From positions 1,178,001-1,242,000 of the forward strand of contig LSRY02000003.1 in assembly GCA_001643675.2 (NCBI GenBank): a DNA stretch of 64,000 bases, written 5' to 3'. Shown in pieces: positions 3,001-46,702 of this stretch (the first letter of the stretch is position 1; every line of letters begins with the position of its first letter). The notes below the pieces were generated by a model that was given only the letters and a program-made list of their open reading frames with translations, was not told the DNA's origin and made no database searches. Position numbers and translations under genes: made by a program. The DNA is from Monocercomonoides exilis PA203 (Eukaryota; Protista; Preaxostyla).

Positions 3001-3217
3001 GATATTTTTCAGAATTTATTTGCCTTTGATTTCAAATTTTTTATTCAAATACTCATATTTATGGGTCATTTTTAAAAAAATTTTTTTCACGATAAACAAA
3101 TAGTTTTACGAAAAATCGGTCCATACAAAAGTTTTTTAATAATTTTCATATTTCAAGCATCATAAAATAAATATCAAAAAACAAGAATTGCAAAAAATAG
3201 ACAGTTATACCTATGCC
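62..3217. mobile_element. Non-autonomous Merlin/IS1595-type element ('Pack-Merlin' A) with ~390-bp TIRs and decayed receptor-family cargo
   Basis: 62-453 (GGCATAGGTGCAACTGTC...) is the near-perfect reverse complement of 2826-3217 (...GACAGTTATACCTATGCC). Termini match elements 23151-36079 and 26732-30630. Flanks GATTAAAA / AAATAATG do not form a TSD. Confidence 0.85.
800..2250 (+). pseudogene. Degenerate fragment of the beta-helix/TM/pseudokinase receptor family inside element A
   Basis: Broken ORFs with family-like motifs (GGMCVSV...FERNNAWKGKNVYLEC..L..SVNNE...F.F). At ~2140-2185 the juxtamembrane motif IVNDNIKKDPKVFKM matches IVNDNIRKDPKAFEM at ~20923. Many stops and frameshifts. Confidence 0.7.
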
Positions 3218-16000: not shown

Positions 16001-19000
16001 TTTGTGTGCGAATCATTTGTCGCTTCTGTGAAGGAACCATTATTCGCCTTCATGGGAAACATCCCTCAGAAAGACAACTCAGTTGTTGGACATGATAGAA
16101 CAGAAGCATTCGGTGATTGGGATGTCGATTTGTTTATATTCTTTGACGGTTACTTTGATGATACAATATTTGTGGATGTAATATCAGGAGTGGAAGAGGT
16201 GTATTGCGGTCTGGAAAAGGCACCATGTTTGAATGTTAATTATGGGATGGGGCGTTTGAAGAGAACACTGAATGTTAAAGAGGAAATTATTGTAATCTCA
16301 AAATCGTCTTTAAGGGGATGTGTGGATGTGGGTGGAATGTGCGTGAAAGCAAAAACTGAGACAATTGTGCAGATTGAATGTCAAAGGGATGTGAGTGGAT
16401 CTGAAGAATGCATTATGAAATCGACATCACCGACAGAAATGAAGTTCATTGGAATTATTATTCCATCGAGTTTTAACAGAACAGTCTCAGCAGTGATCGA
16501 ATCGAGCACTCAAAATGGGGAGCTACACATGAAGAATTGTGCGATGAATGTTGTTGGAGGAAAGGAAAATACAATTGGATATTTCTTGATCAAATCGACA
16601 GGGAAGATGGTTGAATTGGACTCTGTCACGATTTCAGATGTGAAATCATCAGTCTCGCTATTTTCATTTTCACTTTCCTCATCAAATATGAACGATCAGG
16701 AATACAAAGTGAAACTATTGAATTGCACACTGCAAAGATTGGAAATTGATGGAGGTGAAGAGGCAACAGTGTTTGGAGGGAGTGTGGGAGTTGGGATGAT
16801 GATAAATGGAAGCAATATTGAAGGGCATTGTCGGAAAAGAGCAAAGAAGGAGGAGCGCTGAAAATAGCGTTGAATGAAGGAGGATATATGACAATTCAAG
16901 AGAGCTCATTTGTTGGATGTGTTTGTGAGAATAAGAGTGAGGGAGGAAAAGGAGGAGGAGTGTATCTGGATTGCAGTCTGAATGAAGAAGCATTTCAGCT
17001 TTCATCGATATCGTTTTCTGGATGCTCAGCAACAGTTGGGAAGAACATGTTTGTGAAGAGCAGCAGTCTGGTGAACAGTGTGAAAATAGAGCGTTTTGCA
17101 TTTGATTACTCGGGATATTCTAATGATGAGAATGCATTTGTTGGGAAAGATGGAAAATATGAAGAAATGGATCTTCGAGTATTTCTTGTTGAACTGAAGT
17201 GGGTGGAGGTGTCTGTATCGACTGGTGGGCATGACACATTGGGATGTGGAGATGAAACATTTCCATGCCAATCTATGAAAAGTGGAATTGACCACATTGA
17301 CAGAAGTGGAACAGAAGGAGAAAGGAAAGTGAAAGTGAAAGATGAAGGAACAATTGAGTATATTTATTCCTTTACAGATGCTCTTGTGATCGATGGAGAA
17401 GCCATTAAACATAAGACTGTTCATTTTGAAGGGACAATCAAAGGGAATTCAGCATCAGCATCTTCATCTGTTATTTTATCAACAGTATCACTCAGCTTGC
17501 TATCATTGAAGCTGCAGATTCCAAGTCAATTTGTACCAAGTATAAATACACTGATCTCATCGAGTGGAGATCTTCAACTCGAAAACTGTTTATTTGAGAT
17601 GCGATCAACAGATATTATTCAATACTCATTGATAACCACAACAACTGGAAGTTGCACATTGAATGGATGCAGTTTGACAGATTGTTCATTTGCCAAATCT
17701 CCCTTGGCGATTTCTTCTTCTGTTTTGTTTGAAAACAGCAACTTTTCAAATATTGTGAACGCTGGAAGCAGTGGAGAAGGAGGTGTTGCAAAAGTGACAT
17801 TAAAAGGAAATGAAGAACTGGTGATTAAATCAACAAATGCATCATCTTGCTCACTTTCATCAAGCAATGGGAAAGGAGGATTCTTGTATTTGGATTGTGA
17901 AAATTGTTTGAATGAAAATCCATTTATTTTTGATACTGGCGTAACATTTGAGAACAACAATGCAACTTTTGGAAAGAATATGTTCATTTTGGCAAAAGAT
18001 TTTAACAGTTCTGTTACGAATGAGTCATTTGCCTTCAATTACTCATCAATGAAAGATGATAACAATTTGTTTGTGGGAAGTGATAACTTTCACTCAAACA
18101 AAGATTTGTTCATGTTCCTCGTTCCATTCAGCTCATTTGAGATATTTATCTCATCAGAAGGATTTGATGTTGCAAGATGTGGAAGTGAGGAAGAACCATG
18201 CAAAACGATGTGGAAAGGGATGAAAAATATGGAAACGGGAGATGATATGAAAACAATTCAAATATCAGGATCAACAATTATTCAAGATTCATTCAGCATG
18301 TCCAATTATCAGATCAAAAAGGCTTCATCAATGGGAGAAGAAGATACAAAAGCAACTTTGAATTTTGAAAAGGCAGTTGGAAGTCAACTGGAATATTTCA
18401 TGGAAAATGATGATCATTTTGAATTGATGAATATCCAACTGCAACTGGAATCGGGATTTAACAACTCAGCCAAAACGATTATTTCAAATAAAAATGGAGA
18501 TTTGGTGATAAGTGGATGCTCATTCCATTCAGAAGCAGGAGTGAATAGTGAATTTGATTGTGTATTTGTGGATGTGATTGGAGGAACTGTGGAAGTGAAT
18601 GATTTGTCGATTGAATCATGCAATGTTGGAAACAGTATATTTGTCATTCATGATGCTGGAGTTTCTTGCCATTTGATGAATGTTCGAGTGGAATTGTTGA
18701 ATGAAAGTGGAGGTTGCATTTTATCGATCAAGAAATCTGAATTAACAACAAAGATAAATGAAGAAGGAATAAATATTGAGATTGATAATTCATCATTTTC
18801 AGGAGTGAAGAGAAGTGACAATGGACCAAGCATTTTGGAATCAAAGAGTGACAAAAAGATTTGTTTGGTTGTGAATTCGAGCAACATCACAGAAGATAAG
18901 GCAGAATATAGTGAAAAAGGAGGGGCGATATTCTTCACATTGGGTGCTTCAGGATCAATGAAGATGATTGGCTCAACAATCAGCCATTGCAGCTGCAGCA

Positions 19001-22000
19001 ACAACACAGGAAGAGGAGGAGGAATGTATTTGGCAACAAAGGAAAGAGGAGGATTAAATTTCACATTTGTGGGGATGAAATTCAATGGAAATACAGCAAA
19101 GGTGGGAAATGATATTTTCATTGAATGCTTCAACATCACATCGCAGATCAATGAAAGGCAATTCCAATTTGATCTTCGAGAAGGTCATTACAATCGCAGT
19201 AATGCAATATTTGGAAGAGATGAGTGTGATTATCCAAGTGATACTGATCTGATTGAATTTGTGACGATTCATCAGAGTGACACAATTGTTGTGAGCAGTG
19301 TGAATGGAACGAATGAGAGACAATGCGGAACAAACACACTTCCTTGTTATTCAATTAATCATGGGCTGATACATATGACTTCTGATTTCATAAGTCAAAT
19401 GTTCATTGTTGAAGAAAGTGTGATTGAGGAAGAGATGAATCTGGAGGAGATGAGTCTGAGTTCGAAGAGCAGAGATTTTTGTGAAGTTGAAGTGAAACCA
19501 GAGATTACAAGTGAAAAGAATTCTTTGATTTCAACAATAGGAACAGTCTCATTGTTGAGAGTGAATTTTGTGTTTGATTCGAATTTCATTTCTCAACATG
19601 AATCATTAATATCACCAGATGGAGGAATTCTTGAGATAATGAATTGTTCTTTTTCATCTAAGCAATTAATAGAAGATGGAATTGTTGCTTTTACGAGAAT
19701 TCCATTTCACATCATAAATATGGCAAAGGGAGAATTACAAATCATGGAATGCAAAGTGACAAATCTTGTGCTTCATAAATCTGCATTATATCTTTCATCT
19801 TCTCTTCCATCAGTAATTGATTCATTATCAATTTGCAATTCTACAATAGAAACTTCTCTGATTGATATAAATGAATGTGGACAATTGAAAATTGATAGAC
19901 TGCTTGCTGAAAATATCACAGTTGAAGGAAAAGAAGAATCATTGATATATTGCCTTTCAATGAAAAAGACAGTGCAATTGGCAAATTGCACAATAGGTGG
20001 AGTCAGTTCAAAGACCACAAAAGGGAAATTGATGAAAGTGGAGAATGGTTTGGATGTGAAAATGGACAGTTGCATTTTCGATGGGAGTTCAAAGGAAAGA
20101 AATGAGCAATATTTGAATGAGGAAGAAGAGATGTGCAGATGGGATGGATCTCTTGTTGATATCACCAAGAGTTCTGTTTTGATGAAAGATACAACATTGT
20201 CGAATTCACCAGATGGCGGAATAACAATGAGCGGAGGAAATGTGAATATTGAGAAAGGTGAGTTTTTGAATAACAATCCATCAATTGAAGGATATCCATC
20301 ACTGAGAAGAAACATCATCTGTTCAGATTCTGGAACATTGAATGTGATGAGTTTGAAAGGAGGAGATGGATTGAAGGATAATACATCACTTTGGATGTTG
20401 AATGATGGGTGCAGTTTTGAGGGGATTGTTTCAGAAAGAGATTCATCATTCTTCATTCCAGTGTTGGAAAGCGTGGAAGCAAAAGAAGAGACAGATAGAA
20501 TGAAGTTGATATTCAAAGGGATGCTTCTTTTTCCATGCAATCTGTCATTCTCAATTGTAAAGAGAAAAGGAGAAGAGAAAGAGATAGAAAAACATGATTT
20601 TGATTCAAATGGGTTTTTGTCAGAAAGAGAAGTTGAAGGAAGTGTGGGAAAAGATCTGATCAGCAGTTGTGGAGATGAAATCGAAGTTAGTGTGCACATT
20701 TTGTTTGGGAATGCTGAATCTCCATCATCAACAAATCCATTTATTCTGAAGAATTCAACTGTATCTGATGGAGATGGAAACATTGCGAAAAGAGGAAACC
20801 TGACCAGTTCATTGTGGATAATAATTACACTTATGATTGTTCTTTTTGTAATTCTTATATCACTTGTAATATTTATTGTTCGATGGAAGAAGGCAAAGAG
20901 AAGAACAGAAGAATTGGAAGTGATTGTGAATGATAACATCAGAAAAGATCCGAAGGCATTTGAAATGGTGACGATGGAGATGTCACCAAAGGAGCAGTGG
21001 AGGAGAGCAGAAAGGGAGGCAGAGAAGAAAAATGAAAAGAGGACAAAGAAGAGAGAATATGAAAAGAAAATGCATCATTCTGAGTCATCTGAATATCTTT
21101 TGGCTGAAAGTGGATCAACGGAATACATCCTTGGACAAGATTCTGATAAAAATGGAGAATGGAATTTGGAGAAGAAAGAAGAGACACAAAAGCGAATTCC
21201 ATCACCATCAATCTCATCCACAGATACAGAAACCACATTTGTTCGGGTGGAGGATTTGTTTCCAACAACCTCATCGATGTCGAATCTGGTGGATGCAATG
21301 GCATGTTCATCGCCTTATGAAAAGCTGATTGTGGATTTGAGAGATTCGTTGTTCATGCTGCTTCATGGGAGGAATGAGAAGAAAGATCTGGCGATTGGCA
21401 CATTGAAGGAGAGAGAGGTGACAGGAGCGCAGATGCTGTTCTGGGTGGCGAATGGAGCGTTGCACTCGCTTGAAGATGAGGAAGACGAACTTCCCTCTTT
21501 GCGAGACCTGAGTCCGCACATTGTGCTGTTCTCGGAGCACATGGTGATCTGCATTGCCCTCCGCTCCGACTGCTCCTCGTCATCTGATGATTCGGATTCA
21601 TCCTCAACCGCATCAACCACGATTGTGACATCTGCAAGTGAGGATGATGATGATGATGATGAAAGAGATTCTCTGCCATCATCAGCGTTTGAGGATGATG
21701 AAGACAAGTGGAAGGAGTGTTTGAGGTGGAAGGCACCAGAGCTGGTGAAGAACAGGAGGATGGGAGCAACAGAGAAGTCGGTGGCATTCTCGATTGGGAT
21801 GATGCTGTGGGAGTGTGTGACACTCGAGATCCCGTTTGGGGAGTATGAGGGAGTGGTGGCAGGGCAGAAGATTGCTGATGGAGAGAAGCCGGATGAGAGG
21901 GGGATTGAAGAGAGCATGATGAAGAATGTGGTGGATGCATGTCTGTCATCAGAGGCATCGAAAAGACCGACACTCACTGAAGTGAAGAAAGAGCTTGTTG

Positions 22001-22131
22001 GACTGTTTCCTTCTGGGACATTTGTTGTGACAATGGCAGATGCGATCATTCTTGAGGAAAGCAGTGAAGAAAGAGAAGAAAATGATGAGAGCAAAGAATG
22101 TGAAAAGGAAGGAATACTGGAAAGAGAATGA
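13100..22131 (+). CDS. Giant (~3010 aa) receptor-like protein: signal peptide, Ser/Pro/His linker, GGA(I/L)/FxxN beta-helix (Pmp/pectin-lyase-like) repeats, TM, TKL-like pseudokinase; one frameshift at ~16823
   Basis: ORFs 13100-16861 and 16828-22131 join if one G is restored: GAAGGGCATTG here versus GAAGGGGCATTG in the paralogue at ~61545. Repeated CG....PC motifs. TM at ~20810-20880. RWKAPE and SIGMMLWE near the C-terminus. Intronless. Confidence 0.9.
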
Positions 22132-23567
22132 GATGAAAGACATGTTTGGCAAGGAATGAGAACTGAAAGCAAAAGAAACATTAACAAAGCATGAATGCTT
22201 GATGTCAGAGAAAGAAAATTGTTTCAACATTTTTGACTCAATTTTGATTGCAGCTGAAATTCACTTCGTTGATTTTTGAGGTGAGTGTGAAAACAAGAAA
22301 AAGGTTGATTGAACATGAGTATTTTGAGATCGGAATGTTTTCAAGTGAATGAAAGATGATTTTTTATAGTGACTTTTAAAGACCTTTTTTTTTAAATAAA
22401 ATATGTAAATTTAAAAAAGTTTTATACAACATTTAAAAGGAAATGAGGAAATTATATTTTTAACCAGCAAAGAAAAATGTTTACTTCGAGTTGAAGAATT
22501 CGAAAACAATAAAACTACCTTCAAAAAGAATATTATTCTCACGAAATAAAAAAATGACTTTTTGTATTCTAATCTGGAGAAAACATTTAAAATTGTAATA
22601 TTGAAATTCATAAAAAAAGCAATTTTGCAGCGGTCCTCTCATCAGCAATTCGATTATTTTATTTCTGATGAATTCAAAAAGAAAGGAAGGAAGGAAGGAT
22701 AACTTTAATAAATAAACCAGATCATATTTCATCTCACTCAAAAAATGAGCAAACAAACAAAAATTTAAAATTAAAAACAAGAACAAAAAATAGAATAAAT
22801 ATATTAGACAAAAAATAAATCAATCAATCAATAAATCAATAAAATTATGTGCGGGAAAACACGGACATTTGATTCTTTTTATGCACAAAGCATGCATAAA
22901 TTGATTTTCTCATAACTTTATCAATCATTCTCAGATTTCTAAATTAATTAGTTTTTCTAATCTGCAAACAGTCATCATAGATGTTATTTTTAATATTTTT
23001 GTTTCATTCCATGAATGCAAAAAAAATGAGCACATTTTTATTGAATCTTTTGAACACAAAAAGTTAACAAATAGTGCATAATTTTTCTATGAAATTGCCT
23101 GAAGTGAAATATTTTGTACCAAATCATAAATTATTTTAAAAACAAAAAAGGGCATAGGTGTAACTGCGTCCCTTTTGCAATTCTTGTTTTTAGACATTAA
23201 TTTTGTGATGTTTGAAATGCAAAAATTATTTAAAAACTTTTGTATGGACCGGTTTTTCGCAAAAATTTTTGTTTCTCGTGAAAAAACCATTTTTAAAAAT
23301 GACCCATAAATATGAGTATTTTTTCAAAAAATAAATAAAATTAGATAATAATGAAATAAAAAGTGGATAAAAGGTCATTAATTATTATATTGTCCTATTT
23401 TAATAATAATGATTTGGGAAATAAAACATAAAAAAAAATAAATTAAAAAATTAAAATATTTTGATCAATCCCACAATTAAATTTTTAATATCCAAAAAAT
23501 AAGAAATTAGTTTCTTTCATCGTGAATTGAACCCTCGTTTGCGAACATATAACGAATCATATATATA

Positions 23568-24017
23568 CAGTCAAAACCGGATATAATCACGTCGAATATA
23601 ATCACATTCGCATATAGTCACATTTTTCCATGCACCGACATTTTTGGCCTATTTTTCATTCATTTTCCATCGCATACAATCACAGGGCTGAAAATATATA
23701 ATCACATTTTTTGTTATTATGGGTGATTATTTCAATGAAAAATCGATTTTTTGATCAAAAATCTCAAATTTTCGCGTTTTCAAAAATGTGCTCAAATAAG
23801 TCAAAATAATATGTATTTATGAAAAAAATTGTTTTCGCGAGTGAAAAATGCGTTTTAATGAAGAATTTTCGAAAATGAAAAAATCGACCCAAAATTAATT
23901 AATTAATTGATTGATTTTTATTTTTTTCTGTGTTAAGCAGCATCGTATATTATCACAATCGGATATAGTCACAAAAAGTTGTGCAAAAACAGATGTGATT
24001 ATATCCGGTTTAGACTG
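23568..24017. mobile_element. 450-bp Tc1/mariner(pogo)-type MITE in the left arm of element B
   Basis: TA|CAGTCAAAACCGGATATAATCAC ... GTGATTATATCCGGTTTAGACTG|TA (22/23 TIR match, TA TSD). Internal repeats of ATATA(A/G)TCAC. Confidence 0.85.
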
Positions 24018-24291
24018 TAAATATAGTTTTAAAGTGTGTGATAAATAATTATCAATATATCATTCAAATCTTTATGAATTTTGTTTATGATTTTTAGGAA
24101 GATTATTTGCATGCAGCACAAGGATATTATTATTAAACTATGGTGCCAATGAATAAAGAAGAACAAACAAATCGTGTGAAACATTCTTTTTAATTATTAA
24201 CATTGTTTTATTAAAATTTTTCGCAAAACACATTAAATATCATTCATTTTCTTATGAAATTAAATAGATGTTAAATGATAAGCATTAATCA

Positions 24292-26379
24292 ATGCAGCAA
24301 CATAAATGTGTATGGAGGAATGGTGTATTTTCGACAATAGAGATCGTGAAGTTTTGGTTTATATCTATTGAAGAAAAGTTCAATGCCACAACAGCAACAG
24401 TTGGAAATGAATTTTTTGTTGAATATTTCAACATCTCAACGCAAATCAATGAAAGCCAATTCCAGTTTGATTTTCGAGAAGGCAACTTCAATCAATTCAA
24501 TGCAATATATGGAGGTGACAGTTGTGAACACAAAGAAGATACAAATCTGATTGAGTTTGTGACTATTCATCAGAGTGACACAATTGTTGTGATCAGTGTG
24601 GATGGATCAAATAACAGACAACGTGGAACAAACACACTTTCATGTGACTCAAATGATTATGGTCTGATGCATTTGACATCTGATTTCATGAGCGTGATGA
24701 TTGTTGTTGAAGAGAGTGTAATAGGAAGAGATATAAATCTGAATGAGATGGGTTTTAAAGGGGGAGAAGGTATGGAGAAAAACACATCTCTGCGGATATT
24801 GGATGAGGGATGTCAATTGGGAGGAATAGCGAGTGAAAGAGGATCATCATTTTTCATCCCTGTCTTGGAAGAAGTGAAGAGCACAACACAGGCGAGTGGG
24901 GGCATGGACTTGAGCATTCGTGGGAAGCTGCTTCTTCCTCACAAATTGTCACAAGAGATAAGTATGAAAGATGGGGATGAAGAGGAGCTTGTGAGAAAAG
25001 GGATTGAAGAAGAAGGGTTTGCATCAGAAAATGAGATTCACTCAGTTGTTACACGTTCAGAATGGGAGAAAGTGAGAGAAGAGACAGAAGTGAGTGTGTG
25101 GATTGTGTTTGGAAAAGCTGATTCTCCATCCGCAACTGAGTCATTCATTGTGAAGAACAGGAGTGAAAGTGTTGGAAAAGGAGATGAAAGAATTGTTGAA
25201 GGAGGGATAGAAAGGAAATCATATTTGTTGCTAATTGTTATAATCATGACAGTTATTCTTGTGATTGTTTTGATTGGATTCATTTTGTTTGTTGTTCGTT
25301 GGAGAAAGCAAAAGAGAAGAACAAAGGAATTGGAAGAGATTGTGAATGATAACATCAAGAAGGATCCGAAGGCATTTGAGATGGTGACGATGGAGATGCC
25401 ACCCGAGGAGCAGAAGAGGAGGGCAGAGAGGGAGGCTGAGAAGAAGAATGAAGAGAGAATTAAGAAGAGGGTGTACGAGAAAAGCTTGGGACACTCGGAG
25501 TCATCAGAGCGTCTTTTGTCTGAGAGTGGTTCCACTGAATACATATTGGGCAGAGATTCAGAGAAGATTCCACAATGGGCACTGGAAAAGGCTGATGATG
25601 AGGAAGAGGAGAAAAGGAAGCGAAAGCCATCGCCATCCATTTCATCCACTTCAACGACAGATACGTCAGATACAGACACAACATTTGTTCGAGGAGAGGA
25701 TCTGTGCCCCAGAACCTCTTCAATGTCGAACTTGGTGGATGCAATGGCATGCTCATCACCTCATGAGAAGCTGATTGTGGACTTGAGGGATTCTCTGTTC
25801 ATGTTGCTTCATGGGAGGAATGAGAAGAAAGATCTGGCGAATGGCACGTTGAAGGAGAGGGAGGTGACAGGAGCGCAGATGCTGTTCTGGGTGGCTGGTG
25901 GGGCGCTCTTCTCCTTCGAAGACGGAGAGGACGATCTTCCCTCTCTGCCAAACCTCAGCCCACACATCGTGCTGTTCTCCGAGCACATGGTCATCTGCAT
26001 CGCCCTCCATTCAGATTTCTCTTCTGATGATTCTGACACATCTTCCATCTCTTCATCAACCGTTGTTACATCTGAAAGCGATGATGATGATGATGATGAC
26101 AGAAACGATAGAGACTCTCTGCCCTCATCAGCATATGAGGAAGAGGATGAGGATGCCTTCAAAAAAGAGTGCCTGAGGTGGAAGGCACCTGAGTTTCTGA
26201 TCAACAAGAAGATGGAAGCAACAAAGAAGTCGGTGGTGTTTTCGATTGGGATGATGGCGTGGGAGAGCCTGACGCTGGAAGTGCCATTTGTGGAGGATTC
26301 AGCAGAAGCAGCGGGGCAGAAGATTGTGAACGGGGAGAGATCGAATGTGAAAAAAGTTGAGTGGTATCGACTGAAATGA
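24292..26379 (+). pseudogene. Captured, 5'-truncated and internally deleted receptor-pseudokinase copy (695-codon ORF) in the left arm
   Basis: Homologous to 19070-22000 of the full-length gene. About 299 codons are deleted in frame at ~24750. TM and pseudokinase are kept, there is no signal peptide, and the ATG lies in eroded upstream homology. Confidence 0.8.
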
Positions 26380-26731
26380 ATGATGGTAAAAAATGAATAG
26401 GTTCAGATGCCAGATAAAATTTCATTTTCAGAAATGAAAAAAGAATTTATTTGGTAATCACGTGCGAATGCTGCAATGCCGATAGTGTCAAATGCGATAT
26501 GTTATGTAGGGGGAATTAGAGAAGAAAGAGGCGATAGCTTTGCTCAAAGAGACAGCAGAATAGTGGAGTGTATTCTGATGGATGAGCACAAAGACATTAT
26601 CGTTGTTATCAATGGGAACAGCCCAAACAACAAAAACGATAGAAATTGAAAAGACAATTTTGAAATAAACGAAATGTGTATGTGTGAATGCATTTAAGCA
26701 TTGATCGTTGAATGTAAATATATACTTCAAT

Positions 26732-29700
26732 GGCATAGGTGTAACTGCGTCCCTTTTGCAATTCTTGTTTTTGATCATTAATTTTGTGATGTTTGAAATG
26801 CAAAAATTATTTAAAAACTTTTGTATGGACCGGTTTTTCGCAAAAATTTTTGTTTCTCGCAAAAAAACTATTTTTAAAAATGACCCATAAATATGAGTAT
26901 TTTTTCAAAAAATAAATAAAATTAGATAATAATGAAATAAAAAGTGGATAAAAGGTCATTAATTATTATATTGTCCTATTTTAATAATAAAAAATTGAGA
27001 AATAAAACATAAAAAAAAAATAAATTAAAAAATAAAAAATTATTTGATCAATCCCATAACTAAATTTCATGTTTGAAAGGAATCTGTTTTTGCTTTTTTG
27101 CAAAATAGATTGTGCAAATTCTGGCAGATCTACATAAAACTTCATGAAAATGAAATTTCACATTATAAGATGAAAATTAGCATTTGAATTTGCTTCAACA
27201 GGCTGCGCATTTTCATTTTGAATATCAAAGATCATTCTTGTTCATTTCAGAAATGATTCAGTTTTGAAAATGCTATTTATTAATTCCTCTTTTTTGTTAG
27301 TATTGTATTATGTTGCTTTATTCGAAAATGTTCGTTAATAATATTCATATTTTGTTTTTTTCTTTTTTTGTTCATTTCAGCATACCGTTAATTGATTTTC
27401 GATTCAATGAGATATTTATAAATATTTTTTTTTGTTCATATTGTGATTTCTTTTGAAAAAAATAAACGAATGAATTTAAAATTGTTCTCCTTGAAAAACT
27501 TCTTCATTGAAAAAAAAATATAGTAATTTCATATTCATTTTTCCTTTCACTTTTTTAATTTTTTATCAGTTCGTTGAGAAAAAAGAGTGTTCTTTTTATT
27601 CATCAGCCTTTCCATTGCATGCTTCACTTATTTGGAATATCAAAAAACTACGAATAAATTGTTTGATTAAAAAATAACAAATAAATAACAGAATGAACAA
27701 TATTTCCATTTCAAGAAGTTTCAAATTCTTTCTCTATCTGTATCTTTAACTCTATCTCTATCTCAATCTTTATCCCTTTCTCTTCGCTTATCTCTTTCTC
27801 TCTCTTCATATTTTAAATCCTCTTCTTCTTTTCTCAACATCTTTGTCTTCTTCTCATAATTGCCTTCCATTTCCCTTTCCCTCCCTCCTTCCATCTCCCT
27901 CTCCCTCCCTCTCTTTCTCTCTGCTCTCCTCTGGTAATATTTCCATCGTCACTATCTCAATCAATTTCGGATCCTTCTTCACTGTGTAATTCACTTTCTC
28001 CTCCAGTTCTTCTACTCTTCTCTTTTGCTTTCTCCATCTGATTGCCAGAACAATTGAAACAATGAGAACTATCAAAAGAATTATTGCCATAATAATCACG
28101 ATCAACAACCAATAAGATTTCACTTCTTTTTTATTTTCAACCACTTTTTCATCTCCTGTATTTGATTCTGTTTTGTTCTTCAGAATTTGTGGAGAAGTAT
28201 CTTCCAATGGCTTCCCAAACTATATCATCACTGATTCCTCCGTTTCATCTACAATTGAAGAAATATTTTCTGATGGAATTCTTCCAATCACTTCAGTTTC
28301 CGATTCAGACCCATCTTCCTCAAACTGATAAGTCTCAACCAACTCCACATCCCCTGTTTTGAATATCAACCTGAATGACAAATCACATGAAAAATAAGAG
28401 ATCCTTTGAATCTCACAACAATGTGACTTCCATTTTCATTCACAGAAATATCTTCCAGTTTGGGATAGAAGAAAGGAGATGGCTTTTCTCCAGCAATTCC
28501 TTTGAGAGTGCATCCCTCATTCAACATCCAAAGTGATGTGTTTGGCAAAACTCCATCTCCTCCTTTCAAACTCATCACATTCAATGTTCCTGAATCTGAA
28601 CAAATAACATTCCTTCTCAATGATGGATACGTTTCAATCGATGGATTGTTGTCAATGAATTCTCCTTTCTCAATAATCACATTTCCTCCTCTCATTGTTA
28701 TTCCACCTTCTGGTGAATTTGTGATTGTTGAAACTTTCATCACCATGGAACTCTTCACAACATCCACAAGAGATCCATCCCATCTGCACATCTCTTCTTC
28801 AATATTCAACTGCTTCTCATTTCTTTCCTTTAAACTTCCATCAAAAATGCAACTATCCATTTTCACATCCAAACAATTCTCCAATTTCATCAATTTTCCT
28901 TTTGAAGTCTTTGAACAGACTCCACCCATTGTGCAATTTGCTAATCGCATCGTCTTTTTCATTGACAAGCAAGATATCAATGATTCTTCTTTTCCTTCAA
29001 CTGTGATATTTTTTGTATTGAAATCCTTGATTGTTAATTGCCCGCATTCATTAATATCTATAAGTGAATGAGAAATCGTTGAGTTGCTTATCTCAAATGA
29101 ATCAATCACTGATGGAAGAGAAGATGAAAGATGCAGTGCAGATTTATGAAGAATGAGATTTGATATAGAGCACACATCAAGTTGTAATTCTCCTTTTTCC
29201 ATATTTATTATGTGAAATGGAATATTTGCTAAACCTGCATTTACACCTTCCATCAGTTGTTTTGTTGTGAATGAGCAATTCATCACTTCGAGAATTCCTC
29301 CGTCTGGTGATGTTAATGATTCATGTGAAGAGATGAAGTTCGAATCAAACGCAAAGCTGACTCTCAACATTGAAACTGTTCCAGTTGCTGTTATCAATGC
29401 CTCTCTGTTTTCTTCAATCTTTGTTTCAACTTCACCTTCACAATTTTCTCTGTTCTTTGAACTCAAACTCATTTCCTTCAAATTTATCTCTTCTTCAATT
29501 GCGCTCTCTTCGACAACAATCATTTGGCTCATGAAATCTGAAGTCAAATGAACAAGTCCATGGTCTATTGATGCACAAGGAAGTATGTTTGTTCCACATC
29601 TCCTCTCATTCGTTCCATTCACACTGCTCACAATGATCGTGTCACTCTGATGGATCGTCACAAAATCAATCAGATCTGTATCTTCTTTGTGTTCGCAACT

Positions 29701-30630
29701 ATCAATTCCATATATCGCATTAATTCGTGAATAGCGGCCTTCTCGAAGATCAAACCGAAATTGCTTTTCATAAATCTGGGATGTTATGCTGATGCATTCA
29801 ATAAAAATTTCATTCCCCACCCTTGCTGCAAATGCGCTGAATTTCATCTCAATCCATGAGTATCCAATTTTCTCTGTTCAAAGTATTCAGAAAAATTTCA
29901 TCTCCTTCTCCCCCTGTGCAATTGCTGAATTTTTTTCATTCAATTCTGTTTTGTCTTTCATATCCATCTTATTTCAGAAAAAAATTAATGAAATTTTTAG
30001 TGTTTAGCCAAAAATTTAAATTAAACAATGTTAATAATTAAAAAGAATGTTTCTTACACTATGTTAGTTCTTCTATGTACACATTTATCATGGATTAATG
30101 AGAATGTCTTCAAATTGCATGCAAATAATCATCCTAAAAATCAAAATCAAAATTCATAAAGAATTGAATGAAATGTTAAAAATCATTCAGTGCACACTTT
30201 AATATAATATACAAATATTATATTTCAATAACAGACATAAACTGGTGTTTCACGGATGACTAAAGAAACTTAATTTAAGTTTTTTGGATAATGAAAATAT
30301 AATTGTGGGATTGATCAAATAATTTTTTATTTTTTAATTTATTTTTTTTTTATGTTTTATTTCTCAATTTTTTATTATTAAAATAGGACAATATAATAAT
30401 TAATGACCTTTTATCCACTTTTTATTTCATTATTATCTAATTTTATTTATTTTTTGAAAAAATACTCATATTTATGGGTCATTTTTAAAAATAGTTTTTT
30501 TGCGAGAAACAAAAATTTTTGCGAAAAACCTGTCCATACAAAAGTTTTTAAATAATTTTCACATTTCAAACATCACAAAATTAATGATCAAAAACAAGAA
30601 TTGCAAAAGGGACGCAGTTACACCTATGCC
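26732..30630. mobile_element. Nested non-autonomous Merlin-type element (element C), 3.9 kb, 325-bp TIRs
   Basis: TIRs at 26732-27056 and 30306-30630. Perfect 8-bp TSD ACTTCAAT at 26724-26731 and 30631-30638. Confidence 0.92.
27800..29900 (-). pseudogene. Captured receptor-family fragment (membrane-proximal ectodomain + TM, no kinase) in element C
   Basis: The 493-aa ORF 28366-29847 aligns with 19075-20540 of the full gene. Frameshifts at ~28400 and ~28215. ORF 27854-28207 has the TM and KKDPK motif, then decays into GA-rich sequence. Confidence 0.85.
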
Positions 30631-30968
30631 ACTTCAATTTTAACTGTAATGAGATGATGTTTGTTTTTGTTTCGAATTTGGATAATCGTTTCGTTGGACT
30701 AACTCTTTTATTATATATTTATTGATGAATCGAATTGATGCTATGAATAAACAACAAGCATTTTTTGAATTTTCATTTATTTTTATTATGTTTTGAAACA
30801 ACAAAAACAACTGTGCAAATAATATTTGAAAAAAAAATATATTTTTTTTCTTTAAAAATTCATAATATAAAAGTGCATATTTCACTCGAATACACAAAAA
30901 AGAGCCATAATTAATATATATTAATTCAAATTTTTTTTTTGCTTTTGCAAAGCCAATCCATTTCACAA

Positions 30969-32367
30969 ATGGTTGAAAACAAATCATTCGAAAAAGAATT
31001 AACATTCAGTGAATTTTTAATGCGATCTAATGGGAAAAATCAGTTGGCTATTGAATTGCTTTCCAAATTGGGGATTATAAAAAGGAATCGAATGTGCTGG
31101 AAATGCGAAAAAGCAATGGAATTAATGATGCAAAAAAAAAGAAAGTGATAACAATGCTTATAAATGCACGAAATGTGTGAAGAATTACAGCTGGAATTAT
31201 GATTCAATTTTTATGGAATTTCATCTTTCACCATTCAAACTTGCATCATTGTTGTATCATTTTTGGTACAAACACTCAATAAATGAAGTCACTTTTGAAT
31301 CGAAAATTTCAAACAAAACTGTATTGAAATTATTCTAAAAGTTGAGAGGAATATGTTGTTATTTTGAAACATTCGAAATGGAGAAAATCAGAAAAGATCG
31401 AATAGTAGAAATAGATGAAACTTTAATTCATAAAAGAAAGAACGGTGTTGGGAGATGCAGAGAACGGCAATGGCTATGGGGAGTAGAAGAGAGAAAAGAA
31501 ATTGGAAAGCCACAAAAATTGATTGTCGAATTTCTTCCAGATCGAAAAGCTGATGCCATATTGTATTTTGTAAAAAAGAACATTGAAAGATCTTCAACTA
31601 TTATGTCTGATAAATGGTCAGCATATAACTGCATTAGTGAAAACGGCTTCACCATTGACAGTTTCAATCATTCTCTCAATTTTGTTAAGCCTGAAAATCC
31701 TAAAGTTAACACTCAAACAATCGAAAGTGTGTGGTCCCATCTGAAAAACCACATTCCAAATAGAGGAAGAACATATATCAAGACAAAAGAATATGTTTAT
31801 GAATTTCAATATAGGTTCAACAATAGACTAACATCTACAGCATATATAAAGGAACTTTCAAAAATCAGCAAGAAAAGTTTGGATATTTTCTTCGTGCTTA
31901 CAATGAAAGCGTTGCAAGTTTGAAAAGCATTCTTCTGAAAGAAAGGAAATTAAAATTATCTTCTTATTTATTAAAGAAAGAGGAATTGAGAAAAAGAAAC
32001 AACTATGAAATGTGTGATGAAAATGAACTTGATGAAATGTTGAAGAAAAAAAGATCATCAAAGCTAATATCAGAAATAAAAGAATCAACAAATTCAAAAA
32101 GAAGAAAAATAGATGATGAAGAAGTGAAAGAAGAAAAAGAAAAGATTTAGATCATGCGACGGAAGATTTCTGAAAAACAACGACAGCCAACAGTTAAAAA
32201 CGTTAGAGTTTGAAACCCTAAAGTTTTGTGAAAAAAAAGAGAGAAAGATTGAAGAAATGGAGAAAAAAGAAAAAGATAAAACAAATGCAATTCTTAATCG
32301 AAAAATACTAAGAAGTTTTATTAAATCAACAAATATTGGAACAGAACAGTCTCCAATAAATTTATGA
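30969..32367 (+). pseudogene. Merlin / ISXO2-like (IS1595 family) DDE transposase, disrupted
   Basis: N-terminal Zn ribbon CWKC...CTKC. VEIDET, IMSDKWSAY, NHS..FV and NTQTIESVWS are typical DDE_Tnp_IS1595 motifs. Frameshift in the A-run at ~31132-31140, in-frame TAA at 31336-31338, and probable further frameshifts at ~31865 and ~32140. Confidence 0.9.
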
Positions 32368-32876
32368 ATTTTTATTTCACAACACTATCAATTACATCAC
32401 ATTTTGATCACGTTGCAAAAAAAAACTAATTAACACAAATGTTCGAAAATGAATTTCAAATAAAAACAAACTTCATTTCCTTTTAGTGAAATGAGAATTA
32501 CACATTTCGATGCAAATGTGTAAACATTCTTGTAATCGTAAACATAAATAAGTCCATACGTATATCCACCTACATATAAATTATCATTTGTTTCATTATA
32601 TTGTTCTAACCATGCTTCACAGACACAGATTGGCATTAACATTTGCTTCACTTATTTGTTCCATCTTCACGCACAAGACACAAAAATGCTCAGACAATGC
32701 ACTCTTTCCAATGGACTCTGCTGCAATCCCTATTGTATCAGTCATTGTCTTCACAGTTTCACCTTCCGGAAAATCTTCAACCAGCACACACTTTATTTCC
32801 ACGTGCGATAGCCTGTCTTCAAGATCCGATAGCACACTCATCTTCACTTTCTGCTTCAGCCTGTTCTTAAAACCAG

Positions 32877-34937
32877 CTATTTGTCTTGCCTCTCCCCGTT
32901 CACAATCTTCTGCCCCGCTGCTTCTGCTGAATCCTCCACAAATGGCACTTCCAGCGTCAGGCTCTCCCACGCCATCATCCCAATCGAAAACACCACCGAC
33001 TTCTTTGTTGCTTCCATCTTCTTGTTGATCAGAAACTCAGGTGCCTTCCACCTCAGGCACTCTTTTTTGAAGGCATCCTCATCCTCTTCCTCATATGCTG
33101 ATGAGGGCAGAGAGTCTCTATCGTTTCTGTCATCATCATCATCATCATCGCTTTCAGATGTAACAACGGTTGATGAAGAGATGGAAGATGTGTCAGAATC
33201 ATCAGAAGAGAAATCTGAATGGAGGGCGATGCAGATGACCATGTGCTCGGAGAACAGCACGATGTGTGGGCTGAGGTTTGGCAGAGAGGGAAGATCGTCC
33301 TCTCCGTCTTCGAAGGAGAAGAGCGCCCCACCAGCCACCCAGAACAGCATCTGCGCTCCTGTCACCTCCCTCTCCTTCAACGTGCCATTCGCCAGATCTT
33401 TCTTCTCATTCCTCCCATGAAGCAACATGAACAGAGAATCCCTCAAGTCCACAATCAGCTTCTCATGAGGTGATGAGCATGCCATTGCATCCACCAAGTT
33501 CGACATTGAAGAGGTTCTGGGGCACAGATCCTCTCCTCGAACAAATGTTGTGTCTGTATCTGACGTATCTGTCGTTGAAGTGGATGAAATGGATGGCGAT
33601 GGCTTTCGCTTCCTTTTCTCCTCTTCCTCATCATCAGCCTTTTCCAGTGCCCATTGTGGAATCTTCTCTGAATCTCTGCCCAATATGTATTCAGTGGAAC
33701 CACTCTCAGACAAAAGACGCTCTGATGACTCCGAGTGTCCCAAGCTTTTCTCGTACACCCTCTTCTTAATTCTCTCTTCATTCTTCTTCTCAGCCTCCCT
33801 CTCTGCCCTCCTCTTCTGCTCCTCGGGTGGCATCTCCATCGTCACCATCTCAAATGCCTTCGGATCCTTCTTGATGTTATCATTCACAATCTCTTCCAAT
33901 TCCTTTGTTCTTCTCTTTTGCTTTCTCCAACGAACAACAAACAAAATGAATCCAATCAAAACAATCACAAGAATAACTGTCATGATTATAACAATTAGCA
34001 ACAAATATGATTTCCTTTCTATCCCTCCTTCAACAATTCTTTCATCTCCTTTTCCAACACTTTCACTCCTGTTCTTCACAATGAATGACTCAGTTGCGGA
34101 TGGAGAATCAGCTTTTCCAAACACAATCCACACACTCACTTCTGTCTCTTCTCTCACTTTCTCCCATTCTGAACGTGTAACAACTGAGTGAATCTCATTT
34201 TCTGATGCAAACCCTTCTTCTTCAATCCCTTTTCTCACAAGCTCCTCTTCATCCCCATCTTTCATACTTATCTCTTGTGACAATTTGTGAGGAAGAAGCA
34301 GCTTCCCACGAATGCTCAAGTCCATGCCCCCACTCGCCTGTGTTGTGCTCTTCACTTCTTCCAAGACAGGGATGAAAAATGATGATCCTCTTTCACTCGC
34401 TATTCCTCCCAATTGACATCCCTCATCCAATATCCGCAGAGATGTGTTTTTCTCCATACCTTCTCCCCCTTTAAAACCCATCTCATTCAGATTTATATCT
34501 CTTCCTATTACACTCTCTTCAACAACAATCATCACGCTCATGAAATCAGATGTCAAATGCATCAGACCATAATCATTTGAGTCACATGAAAGTGTGTTTG
34601 TTCCACGTTGTCTGTTATTTGATCCATCCACACTGATCACAACAATTGTGTCACTCTGATGAATAGTCACAAACTCAATCAGATTTGTATCTTCTTTGTG
34701 TTCACAACTGTCACCTCCATATATTGCATTGAATTGATTGAAGTTGCCTTCTCGAAAATCAAACTGGAATTGGCTTTCATTGATTTGCGTTGAGATGTTG
34801 AAATATTCAACAAAAAATTCATTTCCAACTGTTGCTGTTGTGGCATTGAACTTTTCTTCAATAGATATAAACCAAAACTTCACGATCTCTATTGTCGAAA
34901 ATACACCATTCCTCCATACACATTTATGTTGCTGCAT
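32877..34937 (-). pseudogene. Mirror copy of the captured receptor-pseudokinase ORF (686 codons) in the right arm
   Basis: Protein is identical to 24292-26379 up to ...KIVNGER, then has a different tail. Confidence 0.8.
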
Positions 34938-35211
34938 TGATTAATGCTTATCATTTAACATCTATTTAATTTCATAAGAAAATGAATGATATTTAATGTG
35001 TTTTGCGAAAAATTTTAATAAAACAATGTTAATAATTAAAAAGAATGTTTCACACGATTTGTTTGTTCTTCTTTATTCATTGGCACCATAGTTTAATAAT
35101 AATATCCTTGTGCTGCATGCAAATAATCTTCCTAAAAATCATAAACAAAATTCATAAAGATTTGAATGATATATTGATAATTATTTATCACACACTTTAA
35201 AACTATATTTA

Positions 35212-35661
35212 CAGTCTAAACCGGATATAATCACATCTGTTTTTGCACAACTTTTTGTGACTATATCCGATTGTGATAATATACGATGCTGCTTAACACA
35301 GAAAAAAATAAAAATCAATCAATTAATTAATTAATTTTGGGTCGATTTTTTCATTTTCGAAAATTCTTCATTAAAACGCATTTTTCACTCGCGAAAACAA
35401 TTTTTTTCATAAATACATATTATTTTGACTTATTTGAGCACATTTTTGAAAACGCGAAAATTTGAGATTTTTGATCAAAAAATCGATTTTTCATTGAAAT
35501 AATCACCCATAATAACAAAAAATGTGATTATATATTTTCAGCCCTGTGATTGTATGCGATGGAAAATGAATGAAAAATAGGCCAAAAATGTCGGTGCATG
35601 GAAAAATGTGACTATATGCGAATGTGATTATATTCGACGTGATTATATCCGGTTTTGACTG
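35212..35661. mobile_element. Mirror copy of the 450-bp TA-flanked MITE in the right arm
   Basis: TA|CAGTCTAAACCGG...CCGGTTTTGACTG|TA; reverse complement of 23568-24017. Confidence 0.85.
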
Positions 35662-36506
35662 TATATATATGATTCGTTATATGTTCGCAAACGAGGGTTC
35701 AATTCACGATGAAAGAAACTAATTTCTTATTTTTTGGATATTAAAAATTTAATTGTGGGATTGATCAAAATATTTTAATTTTTTTAATTTATTTTTTAAA
35801 ATGTTTTTTTACTCGAATATTCTTTTGTATTATTTGAAAATAAAACAATTTGTGACCTTTCATCCCCTTTTTATTTCATAATTATCTTATTTTATTAAAA
35901 ATTTGTAAAAATACTCATATTTATGGGTCATTTTTAAAAATGGTTTTTTCACGAGAAACAAAAATTTTTGCGAAAAACCGGTCCATACAAAAGTTTTTAA
36001 ATAATTTTTGCATTTCAAACATCACAAAATTAATGTCTAAAAACAAAAATTGCAAAAGGGACTCAGTTACACCTATGCCCAAAAAAGTCTTTTAAGAAAT
36101 AAAATAACACACACAATACACCGAGTGTAGATTAAAGAAAAATAATAAAAAACAAAAGATTGATAATTTTGCATTAAAAGAATTGAAGAATTAACTAAAA
36201 ATAAAAAATTTCAAAATTGTCACTGGATATTCATTAACCCTAATCAAATTTTTCACAACAGCAACTAGCTGGCTAAAGTAACAAAAAACAAAGTGTTACC
36301 AATCATTGAACAAATAAAACACAAATAAACTTAAAGAATATGAAAGTCAAACTATGATATTCAAACTTCGCTTTTGAAGCATTAAAATAATAATACATAA
36401 AAAAAAAAATAAAAAAAAAAAAAATAAACATAATTCAAAATAATAGCTGATTGAAATCTTTTTATATAGATTATCACAAAAAATGTACACTCTTCGAAAA
36501 AAGAAA

Positions 36507-36960
36507 CAGTTTGCGCAAAAAATACCGGACAAGATCGATTTCACAATAACTGCAAGAGGAATAATTCTGACTATTTTCCTATAAATATATCTCGTAAATT
36601 CAAACTCATTTGATACACGAGACTTTCAAAATAGCCTCATTTGTGCTCAGAAAAAATTATCGATTGAAATCTCAGAGAAATAGGATTTTGAATTTTTCCG
36701 AAATATCAAAAATAATTTATTCTGAGCACAAATGAAGCTATTTTCAAAGTCTTGTATATCACGTGAGCTTGTATTGATGAGATGCATTTTGAAGAAAATT
36801 GTCAGAATTATTCCTCTTGCAGTTATTGTGAAATCGATCATGTCCGGTATTTTGTGTGATGTCCGGTATTTTGTGTGATGTCCGGTATTTTGTGTGATGT
36901 CCGGTATTTTGTGTGATGTCCGGTATTTTGTGTGATGTCCGGTATTTTGTGCGATATCTG
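36507..36960. mobile_element. Foldback MITE with Tc1-like CAG termini and ~150-bp imperfect TIRs
   Basis: 36514-36660 is an imperfect reverse complement of 36712-36858 (e.g. GATCGATTTCACAATAACTGCAAGAGGAATAATTCTGAC). Ends are CAG.../...CTG|TA, and the left flank is AA rather than TA. Confidence 0.65.
36840..36953. repeat. 19-bp minisatellite x6 (ATGTCCGGTATTTTGTGTG)
   Basis: Five identical units plus one ending GCG; no spacers. Confidence 0.95.
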
Positions 36961-37185: not shown

Positions 37186-39784
37186 ATGAGCTTCAGAAAA
37201 CACTCATTTGATGAAGACGAAGAATTTGTGAGTATTTTTTCTATTGTAGGAGCTGAAGAATCAAATTGGCTGAATGATTTGGCCGACAAAGCGAGAAATG
37301 AAGAAAACGTTGATCAAATAAAGGAAACTGATTTTGATTATTCAAGCACAAACAATTTGCAAAACATTGAAGGTAAAGTTGTAGTTTTTGTGTTTATTGC
37401 TAACATTTTTATTTAATCTTTGTTTTTAAGATGATAATGATTTTTCAAATAGATTAAAAATTATAAACCAAGCTTTTGATGAAAGGTTTAAACAAATCAA
37501 TGAAACAAAATCTACATTGAATAACATACAAGACTCAACACGTTCTCTGTTTGGTGATTCGACAGCACTTGCACAAACAACATTTTTATTCGATTTAAAA
37601 AACGAGGAATCTTCATTTGTAAGTGAAAGTCAGAGCAGAAATCTGTTTGATAAAATCGATGAAATTCTTGGAATACAATCTCTTAGCGAAAAGATATCTA
37701 AAGAAGCAGAGAACGAAACAAATAAAAAACAAGATTTATATTTGAAAGAGAATAAAAAAAATGAACAAGTTTCACAAATTGAAGACTATATTTTCTCCGA
37801 AGTTACTAGCAATGAACAGTTCAAATCAAACCAGTTACATGACGATTGCGTTCACGGTCAAACGAATGCAGAACTTAACAAGAATTCAAAGCAAATAGGT
37901 AATAATTATTCGAATTTGGAAGATTCTTCTCCATTAAATGATGATTTTGCACTGAAACAAAAAAGTATAGTAATATCAGATGAATTCAAAGGGCACGAAC
38001 AAGATGAAAATACAGATACCTCCAAGACAATTGAAGATAATTTTTCGAATATACATACACCATTAACTGCTTCATATCAGTCTATTCATTCTTTGCTCAT
38101 ACCATCTTCAGATTACTCTTCCTCTTCCTCCTCTTCCTCCTCTTCTTCCTCTTCCTCCTCTTCCTCCTCTTCCTCCTCTTCCTCCTCTTCTTCCTCTTCC
38201 TCCTCTTCTTCCTCTTCCTCCTCTTCCTCCTCTTCCTCCTCTTCCTCCTCTTCCTCCTCTTCTTCCCCTTCATCGTTCGAAGCTGAGATGGAAGCGATGC
38301 GCAAACGGCTGGCGCAACAGCTGGAGGACGAATTTGCTGCTGTTGAAGCAGAGCGCATGGAAAGAGAAAGAAAACAGAAGGAAGAAGAGAAAAAGAGAAG
38401 AAAAGAAATGCTGGCGGCTGATTTTGAGTGCCGGCGCTGGCGACGGGAAGAAAGCGTGATGTGGATTGAGGAGGCGATCATTGCACAGACAAAGAAGAAA
38501 GTTGAAGAATACAAAAGAAATCTGCTGAGCAGACTGAAATGCAGATGGAACAGCGGAAGTGTGGTACTGGAAATGGCAGAGGAGAAAGAAGGAGGAGGAG
38601 AGAAACAGGAGAGAAACAAGGAGAGAAAAGAAGAAAGCAACAGCAAAGACAACGGAACGCTTTCTTCAAGTGCTTCTTCTTTGCATGTAAATTCTTCCTC
38701 GAAGAAGCTTCTGCCCCGTTTGCGTGCTTTCTCTCCGCTGCGAATCAGGCATTACGTTGAATCTAAACAGAACAAGCAAAAAGAGAGCGGCAGTGAGAAT
38801 GTTTCATTGCCTTCTCAAACAGCTCAACCTGTTCTGTCATTAAGGCAAAACGCACTTTCTAGTCAGAGAACACCATCTGCCAGTCTGTTTGCGCAGTCCT
38901 CTCGAAGCAAACAGACTCAGCCGGCTTCTCCTGCGTCTTCGGTTTCATTTGGTGCGAGAAATTCGAAGAATGTAAAGATTTCTTCAGAAAATGCAGAAAT
39001 ATCTGCTTCATCTTCGTTTTTATCATCATCATCATCATCTTCTTCTCCTTCTCCAATTTCATCATCTTCCATTGATTTATCATCTATCCCGACTCTTCCT
39101 CCTCCTGCTTATACATCCTTCGTCGAGGCCTCTCAGCAAATGGCGCAGCGTCTTCTTTCCTTTGCCATCGAAACAGCCGAAAAACAGACAACTTCTGCCC
39201 TCAATTTGACAGCACGAAAGAGCGAAAAGGAGAAAAATGACGAAAAAGAAAAGAAAAAACAAAGTTTATTGAGCGAAAGAAGGAAGTATTTTGCGCAATT
39301 CGATCAAAAACTGACAGAAAGGCTGTTTGAAAAGGATGGCTCTGTCAGAATATCGTTAGAAGACAAAGTTAAGCCTCAGCCATTGAATTCAAACCAACCA
39401 GCTTTAATTGCACAGAATGTGACGAAAACAGACCCGGCTGAGTTTGTGAGGCAGCTGATGCTGCCAAAACTGAAATTGTTGGGAAAGAGGAAGAATGTTT
39501 CTTCTTCTTCTTCTGTTTCTGCTTCTTCTTTTTCTTCTTCCTCACAAAATGATTTCATAAAGTCAGCTTCCAACTCATCATCATCATCATCATCATCATC
39601 CTCTTCTTCTTCTTCTATTTCTCCCTCATTCTCGTCTCTGTCTCAACAAACCAAAAAGCCCTTGACACCAAAGCGTTCTTCATCAAAGCCAGTTTTAAGA
39701 CCGAAATCAGCAGCATCCAACGACAAAGCTAAGAATTTGAATTCCACATCAGGAGAACCTTCTTCTTCACCTTCCATTTCACTA

Positions 39785-39816
<32 letters not shown>

Positions 39817-45800: not shown

Positions 45801-46702
45801 CTTCTTCTTCATATTCCTCTTCTTCATATGGCTCTTCCGCTGCATTGCACTTGCGTCCGCTTTCGCCCTCTCGCAGCGAAAGTGCCAGAGATGAGCTATA
45901 TACACCACCAGCCACTCAAACAGACTTGGGCAGAGCATTCAGAAGAGAATCTCCTCAACAGCACTTTCATTCAGAAAGACACAGTTCTGGTCGCTCCACC
46001 CCGTCTTCTCCTGTTCTTTCTCCTTCTTTGTCATTTTCTCCTTCTTCATCTTCCTCTTCATCTTCCTCTTCATCTTCCTCTTCATCCTCCTCTTCTTCTG
46101 TTTCTTCACATCTTCAGCCAATTTCTATTTCATCCCGTCCTCGTTCTCCTTCCCTCTCCGATGTGAAATACGGATCATCCATCCACAGTGCATCCAATGA
46201 TCGCTATCCAACCTCTTCTGCGTATCCCTCAAATGTGCATCGCACTCCACAGCGCTCAATTGTAGTGACTCCGCCTTCTCCACGCGGAAGCCCTTCACAC
46301 AATCCAATTGCTTCATCATCATCTTCTTCTTCCTCTTCTTCCTCTTCTTCAATATCTTCTTCTCGCGATGTTGCAATTCTATACACCCACATCCCTCCAC
46401 CTTCGCCTCAGAATCTGAACTCAACCGTCGCATCTCGCTCATCTCAGTCATCCATTCGCACCACGTCTTCTTCTTCCACTTCCTCTTTCCCTGCAAGTTT
46501 GCTCTCTTCTCGCCCGCAGTCACCGCCTCTTGTGACGCCAATCTCCATTCTTCAGCCAAAACACCCTGTTTCTGCACAACGAGCCCAGCCAAGAATAGAA
46601 TCAATGCCAAGACAGCCGAAAAAGAATGCACAGAATTCAAGAGCTGCTCTGCTGTCGCAGTTTGACGTGGTGGAAGACCCGAGATTGAAGAAAAAGAAGT
46701 GA
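37186..46702 (+). CDS. Very large leucine-rich-repeat + IQ-motif protein (LRRIQ1-like) inflated by poly-Ser and poly-Glu tracts
   Basis: Exon 37186-37372, GT-AG intron to 37430, then a >3000-codon ORF. LRR units include LLDVSSNQLKTL, LKCLSNQLTSF, LDFGRNNLSG, LRINNNKLRNF and LNASDNQFRSL. IQ-like AEKIQNWMR is followed by DEVVDFDEFD. Confidence 0.7.
38116..38263 (+). repeat. (TCT/TCC)n triplet repeat encoding ~50 Ser
   Basis: Uninterrupted pyrimidine triplet tract in frame in the LRR gene. Confidence 0.9.

Follow-up and report, generated by a model that had tools for sequence, protein, structure and literature searches.

This analysis concerns a 64,000-nucleotide stretch of the Monocercomonoides exilis genome, called the window below (assembly GCA_001643675.2, contig LSRY02000003.1; record position equals window position plus 1,178,000), and the Merlin DNA transposons in it, whose arms carry pieces of a large receptor/pseudokinase gene family. 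The account that we consider probable is that this Merlin lineage captured part of a receptor gene once, long ago, that the fragment has since travelled as passenger cargo renewed by conversion from host genes, and that whole element arms have been copied one onto the other.

Eight elements were compared, namely A, B and C in the window and their sisters at five further loci (L003, L004, L006, L008 and L009), of which L004 and L009 lie on other contigs. The sister loci were fetched by similarity to receptor fragments, while the L006 element turned up by chance in a flank. The window elements and the two long host genes discussed with them are as follows.

62–3217: element A, non-autonomous, with 399-bp terminal inverted repeats (TIRs; 62–460 and 2819–3217, 98.2% identical) and no target-site duplication (TSD)
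1260–2240 (limits approximate), plus strand: cargo of A, a decayed stretch of ectodomain from a divergent receptor subfamily, interrupted by stops and frameshifts
23143–23150: left TSD of B, CAAAAAAG
23151–36079: element B, a transposase-bearing Merlin with two receptor-fragment arms
36080–36087: right TSD of B
26724–26731: left TSD of C, ACTTCAAT
26732–30630: element C, non-autonomous, nested in B, with 337-bp TIRs (98.2% identical)
30631–30638: right TSD of C
27900–29970, minus strand: cargo of C, from the common junction (~29970) to just past the transmembrane (TM) segment, with an open reading frame (ORF) at 28366–29847 of 493 amino acids (aa)
30969–31923, plus strand: Merlin transposase of B, DDE motif retained, reading frame interrupted twice (frameshift near 31146, stop at 31336–31338)
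13100–22131, plus strand: R1, a full-length host receptor/pseudokinase gene outside the TIRs, with two ORFs overlapping at 16828–16861
57821–64000, plus strand: R2, a full-length host receptor gene that continues beyond the window end

The sister elements, by position within their own loci, are these.

L004, 9140–18294: arm–transposase–arm like B, TSD AAGAAGAG, arm repeat of 847 bp
L009, 8161–17545: arm–transposase–arm like B, TSD CATTTGTG, arm repeat of 873 bp
L003: a single arm only
L008, 4655–17455: arms of 5,045 bp (99.8% identical), each with a DIRS-like retroelement insert; no TSD
L006, 309–4860: a further element, of a related GGCATAGG type; TIRs of 211 bp, TSD GATTTCTG, cargo from the N-terminal part of a receptor

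The sequence-only reading that preceded this work had described the three window elements as sharing termini and TIRs, two of them with perfect 8-bp TSDs, one with an IS1595-type transposase and all with receptor pieces, alongside long receptor genes at 13100 and 57821. This description holds. All six GGCATAGG-type termini of A, B and C are at the expected coordinates and each begins 5'-GG, as do the TIRs of L004 and L009. The TSDs of B and C are perfect (a single 8-bp match in these AT-rich flanks has a chance of ~1.5e-4), and the TSDs proved reproducible, three more being present in L004, L009 and L006. A TSD was looked for at A and L008 and none was found. R1 and R2 are 85% identical. The receptor pieces of B and C have 58–69% amino-acid identity to R1, whereas the piece in A, decayed and divergent, reaches 47% (E 4e-11). 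Two further GGCATAGG-like matches, at 53173 and 55472–55480, do not extend into a TIR and were dismissed as chance.

Judged by its ends, TSDs and transposase, the lineage is Merlin. The transposase of B matches PF12762 (DDE_Tnp_IS1595; E 6e-21), and its DDE triad aligns with a Drosophila palustris homologue at 42% identity; a protein search with its C-terminal piece returned one Drosophila protein as the sole match. A match to DDE_Tnp_IS1595 is likewise given by the L004 copy. The N-terminal pieces contain two CxxC motifs, but gave no match to the Zn_Tnp_IS1595 model and only sub-threshold zinc-ribbon matches. What the sequence-only reading omitted is that the gene in B is broken twice. Indeed, it is broken in all three copies seen (B, L004 and L009), in L009 by a single frameshift that may be a sequencing error. 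Distant remnants of Merlin transposases (28–31% identity) were also noticed at L009 526–858, L009 20363–20773 and L012 8537–8869.

The single-family cargo would reflect mostly one ancient capture and not repeated targeting. In B, C, L003, L004 and L009, the arms follow one collinear path from terminus through leader to receptor and have one leader–receptor junction in common, where homology to R1 begins at about aa 710 of R1b; in the left arm of B it lies near 24265. Targeting is not needed to explain the cargo, because five arms have one junction and homology-driven conversion imports the same family only. The TIRs are only ~67–83% alike between subfamilies, and the transposases of B and L004 are 24% different, chiefly at third codon positions (0.16/0.07/0.42), which suggests that both lineages stayed active after the capture. 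Together with the common junction, this divergence would make the capture older than a long period of active transposition. A few additional captures are suggested by A, L006 and the right arms of L004 and L009, whose pieces come from other parts of the receptor in the same gene family. The cargo of A and the right-arm piece of L004/L009 have 71–79% DNA identity.

Exchange between cargo and full-length genes is borne out by three kinds of evidence. L004 and L009 are 94–100% identical in the transposase region and 97–99% at their TIR ends, whereas their left cargos are just 56–85% identical. Trees of two cargo segments (quick trees, built on subsets of the nearest plus random host genes) disperse the cargos among host genes and reject cargo monophyly, with P values of 0.0019 and 0.0001 in the approximately unbiased test (p-AU). 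This rejection and the contrast between the sisters rule out descent of the cargo without exchange. At aa 1200–1300, B, C and L003/L004 fall into three different subfamilies. The third kind of evidence is a pair of perfect tracts that adjoin each other in C.

28510–28896, minus strand: 387-bp perfect tract between C and the full-length gene MONOS_9191, which lies ~690 kb away on the same contig and has no TIRs of this family
28898–29012, minus strand: 115-bp perfect tract between C and R2, within 95–100% identity over ~28880–29060

At a background of 85–90% identity, the chance of a 387-bp perfect tract is below 1e-15. With respect to direction, two host proteins (P0238 and P0218) have the 387-bp haplotype joined to R1-type sequence downstream, whereas C switches after it to the P0004 type, whose host members have another haplotype. 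This favours C as the simpler recipient and a polarity from host to cargo. Further, the junction-proximal cargo is mostly under the host 5th percentile (0.57–0.80 against 0.84) and the interior is at host level; decayed edges around such a middle are expected if conversion requires flanking homology.

The second process is visible in B. From each end inward, B consists of a TIR core, an AT-rich leader with a miniature inverted-repeat transposable element (MITE) and an inward-reading receptor fragment, with the transposase between the arms and C inserted just upstream of it.

23151–26339, plus strand: left arm of B, comprising TIR core, leader, MITE and receptor fragment
23568–24017: MITE in the leader of B, 450 bp, TA-flanked
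24292–26379, plus strand: left cargo ORF of B, 695 aa, with R1b aa ~743–875 fused in frame to ~1171–1690 (TM plus kinase-like tail)
26340–26600 (end approximate), plus strand: receptor C-terminal tail of the left arm only, unconverted and decayed
32626–32889, minus strand: receptor C-terminal tail of the right arm only, unconverted, of a paralogue type different from the left tail
32890–36079, minus strand: right arm of B, mirroring the left, with a cargo ORF at 32877–34937 (686 aa) and a MITE copy at 35212–35661

The TIR of B, which encloses the receptor cargo, thus spans 3.19 kb at 99.0% identity. The arms have 32 differences in the outer 294 bp and none across 23445–26339 (2,895 bp), beyond which they run on as two different receptor tails. 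At TIR positions 175–270 the left end of B is C-like (96%) and the right end is not (74%). The 450-bp MITE is in both arms of B but the leaders of C, L003 and L004 lack it, which argues that its insertion came first and that the copying of one arm onto the other followed. L008, whose two 5,045-bp arms both have the DIRS-like insert, supports the same process. A stretch of identity with differences at both edges is the pattern of arm-to-arm copying, for which break repair is a plausible mechanism. An interrupted relative of the TA-flanked MITE (80% identical) was seen just outside the L009 element (L009 17755–18460), and a 507-bp inverted pair (99%; L004 7679–8206 and 22233–22743), palindromic and MITE-like, flanks the L004 element at a distance.

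The history that we propose begins with a long-lived Merlin lineage that would have taken up the 3' part of one receptor gene beside its TIR, at the junction described above. The captured fragment would then have moved with transposase-bearing elements and their deletion derivatives, as the common junction, TSDs and layout indicate. Ectopic gene conversion with several hundred host paralogues may have overwritten the middle of the fragment in patches, in the host-to-cargo direction if the one polarised tract is typical, keeping it open-reading and mosaic while the edges decayed. Copying of one arm onto the other would also have proceeded inward from the element end over variable lengths, possibly through break repair templated by the opposite arm, a mechanism put forward for maize Mutator (PMC10401008), so that TIRs of 0.3 kb grew to 0.85–5 kb and insertions and cargo were duplicated. 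Both repair processes would be passive, and related subfamilies would have made a few further captures from the same receptor family. The cargo is best regarded as a passenger, no function having been demonstrated for it.

Several points weigh against this account. Four of the five sister elements were located through their receptor cargo, so that the sample is small and biased and gives no cargo frequency. The polarity comes from one tract only, the R2 tract being ambiguous in direction. The identity of the arms of B is known from the assembly alone, and database entries for its two arm proteins come solely from the long-read assembly. Finally, cargo ORFs of 500–980 codons are open beside broken transposases, which selection could also explain.

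The sequence-only reading's 'Pack-Merlin' description, of a Merlin family with receptor segments on board, stands. Of the other explanations, the one that it put forward was a mobile archive of receptor segments that could serve as conversion donors or regulators; in the form weighed here, the archive is functional, its elements keeping and spreading such segments and acting as net conversion donors to expressed genes or, through hairpin RNA, regulating the family. Much of its basis stood: the lineage is Merlin, each element seen has receptor cargo, the TSDs are reproducible and exchange with full-length genes occurs. Receptor pieces are present in each of the four elements whose discovery did not depend on cargo (A, B, C and L006), B has two convergent identical ORFs, and three cargos have longest identical protein runs (63, 72 and 90+ aa) above the host median of 47. 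What did not stand is the argument from single-family cargo, which one junction explains. The sole polarisable tract runs from host to cargo, and long identical tracts occur between host genes at a rate similar to that of cargo–host tracts; among 134 host proteins, 29 have an identical run of at least 60 aa in common with a partner less than 90% identical, so a special donor is unnecessary. About one-third of the window is receptor-homologous, and RNA runs contain 5–6% of the words of 30640–36200, which gives no evidence of expression. A functional archive is therefore unlikely. A second version, in which the arms take part in a receptor conversion network in both directions, transposition carries segments to the resident genes of new chromosomes and the mirrored arms may give double-stranded RNA, is somewhat easier to entertain, though still doubtful. 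If true, a transposon lineage would help to shuffle the largest surface-protein family of M. exilis.

The open cargo could instead be a selected second gene, a truncated receptor with a TM segment and kinase-like tail, without a signal peptide, that is useful to the element or host. Stop-free stretches of 977, 972, 696 and 503 codons start close to the junction, and sister cargos show third-position bias when compared. The latter is also expected if tracts come from functional paralogues, and a conserved in-frame start is absent. Further, the junction-proximal part is frameshifted or decayed, the cargos of B and L008 bear similar internal deletions, C stops after the TM segment and L009 is frameshifted, which together make a selected gene very unlikely. 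That the perfect arms and tracts are artefacts of assembly or polishing is a concern with a Nanopore assembly given ten rounds of Pilon, in which the arm proteins of B lack a record in the older gene set and a palindrome without spacer occurs elsewhere. The arms of B, however, end exactly at TIRs with a TSD and surround 6.5 kb of unique sequence; their outer 294 bp and inner tails differ, and the pattern recurs in L004, L008 and L009. EukProt, a set that probably derives from an earlier 454 assembly, also contains the 493-aa protein of C, R2 and a MONOS_9191 model that includes the tract, which makes a polishing artefact unlikely for the perfect tracts. We regard an artefactual origin as highly improbable.

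The receptor family is restricted to M. exilis among the named homologues of the B cargo ORF, and one region of the B cargo is matched by 414 long proteins. The largest gene family of this genome consists of tyrosine-kinase-like genes (PMC6759080), and PF07714 matches suggest that the receptors here are that set. Unclassified repeats overlap kinase genes in the genome (PMC8767320); the present elements would account for part of that overlap, some annotated MONOS kinase-family genes being transposon cargo. The family as a whole does not appear to be transposon-borne in this sample, because TIRs of this Merlin family were not found at the long genes R1, R2, MONOS_9191 and those in L002 and L005 (at R2, none within 10 kb of the 3' ORF). 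P0029, P0067, P0008 and P0101 were rejected as cargo candidates, none lying within such TIRs. Full-length receptors riding in giant Merlin arms are likewise unsupported, the L002 palindrome having no TIR inside it or 9 kb upstream. That palindrome (L002 6313–23307, LSRY02000057.1) spans at least 17 kb at 99.5% identity, is centred near L002:14810 and mirrors a receptor gene; it is either a fold-back assembly artefact or real. R1 is divided by a frameshift into its two overlapping ORFs and the R2 annotation is also divided, from real lesions or residual sequencing error.

Elsewhere in the window, 36516–36955 holds a MITE-like inverted repeat of 145 bp (87%) that overlaps a 19-bp unit in six tandem copies, and 37517–46702 a low-complexity ORF of 3,061 codons, rich in Ser/Glu runs and unrelated to the Merlin elements. 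No tRNA genes were found in the window.

In silent-cassette systems such as those of variant surface glycoproteins (VSG) and vls, transfer is net one-way, from silent copies to an expressed gene at a dedicated expression site. Here, one tract favours the opposite direction and one is ambiguous. What the lineage does offer is a natural neutral reporter, in which near-identical sister backbones with different cargo record the rate, tract length and direction of ectopic conversion.

Among transposons, the closest relatives are in the Merlin superfamily (Feschotte 2004; Lopes et al. 2021, PMC8101967), which includes the M. exilis families F1–F7 and G1. The 5'-GG termini, 8-bp TSD and DDE_Tnp_IS1595 transposase are alike, and those families inhabit the same genome. 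By its sequence, the lineage is nonetheless not among them: in the available portion of that source, F1–F7 are ~1.4–1.5 kb long with 23–29-bp TIRs and other ends, and none is listed with this transposase motif, so that end sequences, compact ~1.5-kb structure and motif rule out identity with F1–F7/G1. The published Merlin TIRs given there span 24–462 bp; A and C fall inside this range and B, L004, L009 and L008, with arms of 0.85–5 kb, exceed it. The arms here contain host coding DNA, and cargo is not mentioned in that portion of the paper.

Pack-TYPE transposons (Pack-MULE, Pack-CACTA, -hAT, -PIF and -Mariner; PMC8903248, PMC6379663) are non-autonomous plant elements with varied internal cargo, and those two sources do not mention Merlin. 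A search of mostly non-subscription literature for Merlin gene capture or passenger genes found no relevant paper. As in Pack-TYPE elements, host gene fragments are spread by TIR elements, and B, C, L004, L009 and L006 have both a host fragment and a TSD. A and C are non-autonomous and C fits the definition, whereas B, L004 and L009 carry a transposase gene and cargo together. Further, Pack-TYPE cargo is heterogeneous, while here elements with a transposase have it as a fixed part of their arms (a single junction for five arms, in a small, biased sample), and it is apparently renewed by conversion instead of new captures. With this unusual form, both the Merlin superfamily and a metamonad would join the known cases in which TIR transposons capture genes.

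Finally, the cycling of maize Mutator between hetero- and homomorphs, with break repair as the proposed means by which one TIR becomes a copy of the other, likewise gives long, near-perfect TIRs that reach far into the element (PMC10401008). The present elements belong to another superfamily, and what is duplicated is kilobases of host-derived ORF, a MITE or a DIRS-like insert, providing a probable example of TIR growth several-fold through arm-to-arm copying.

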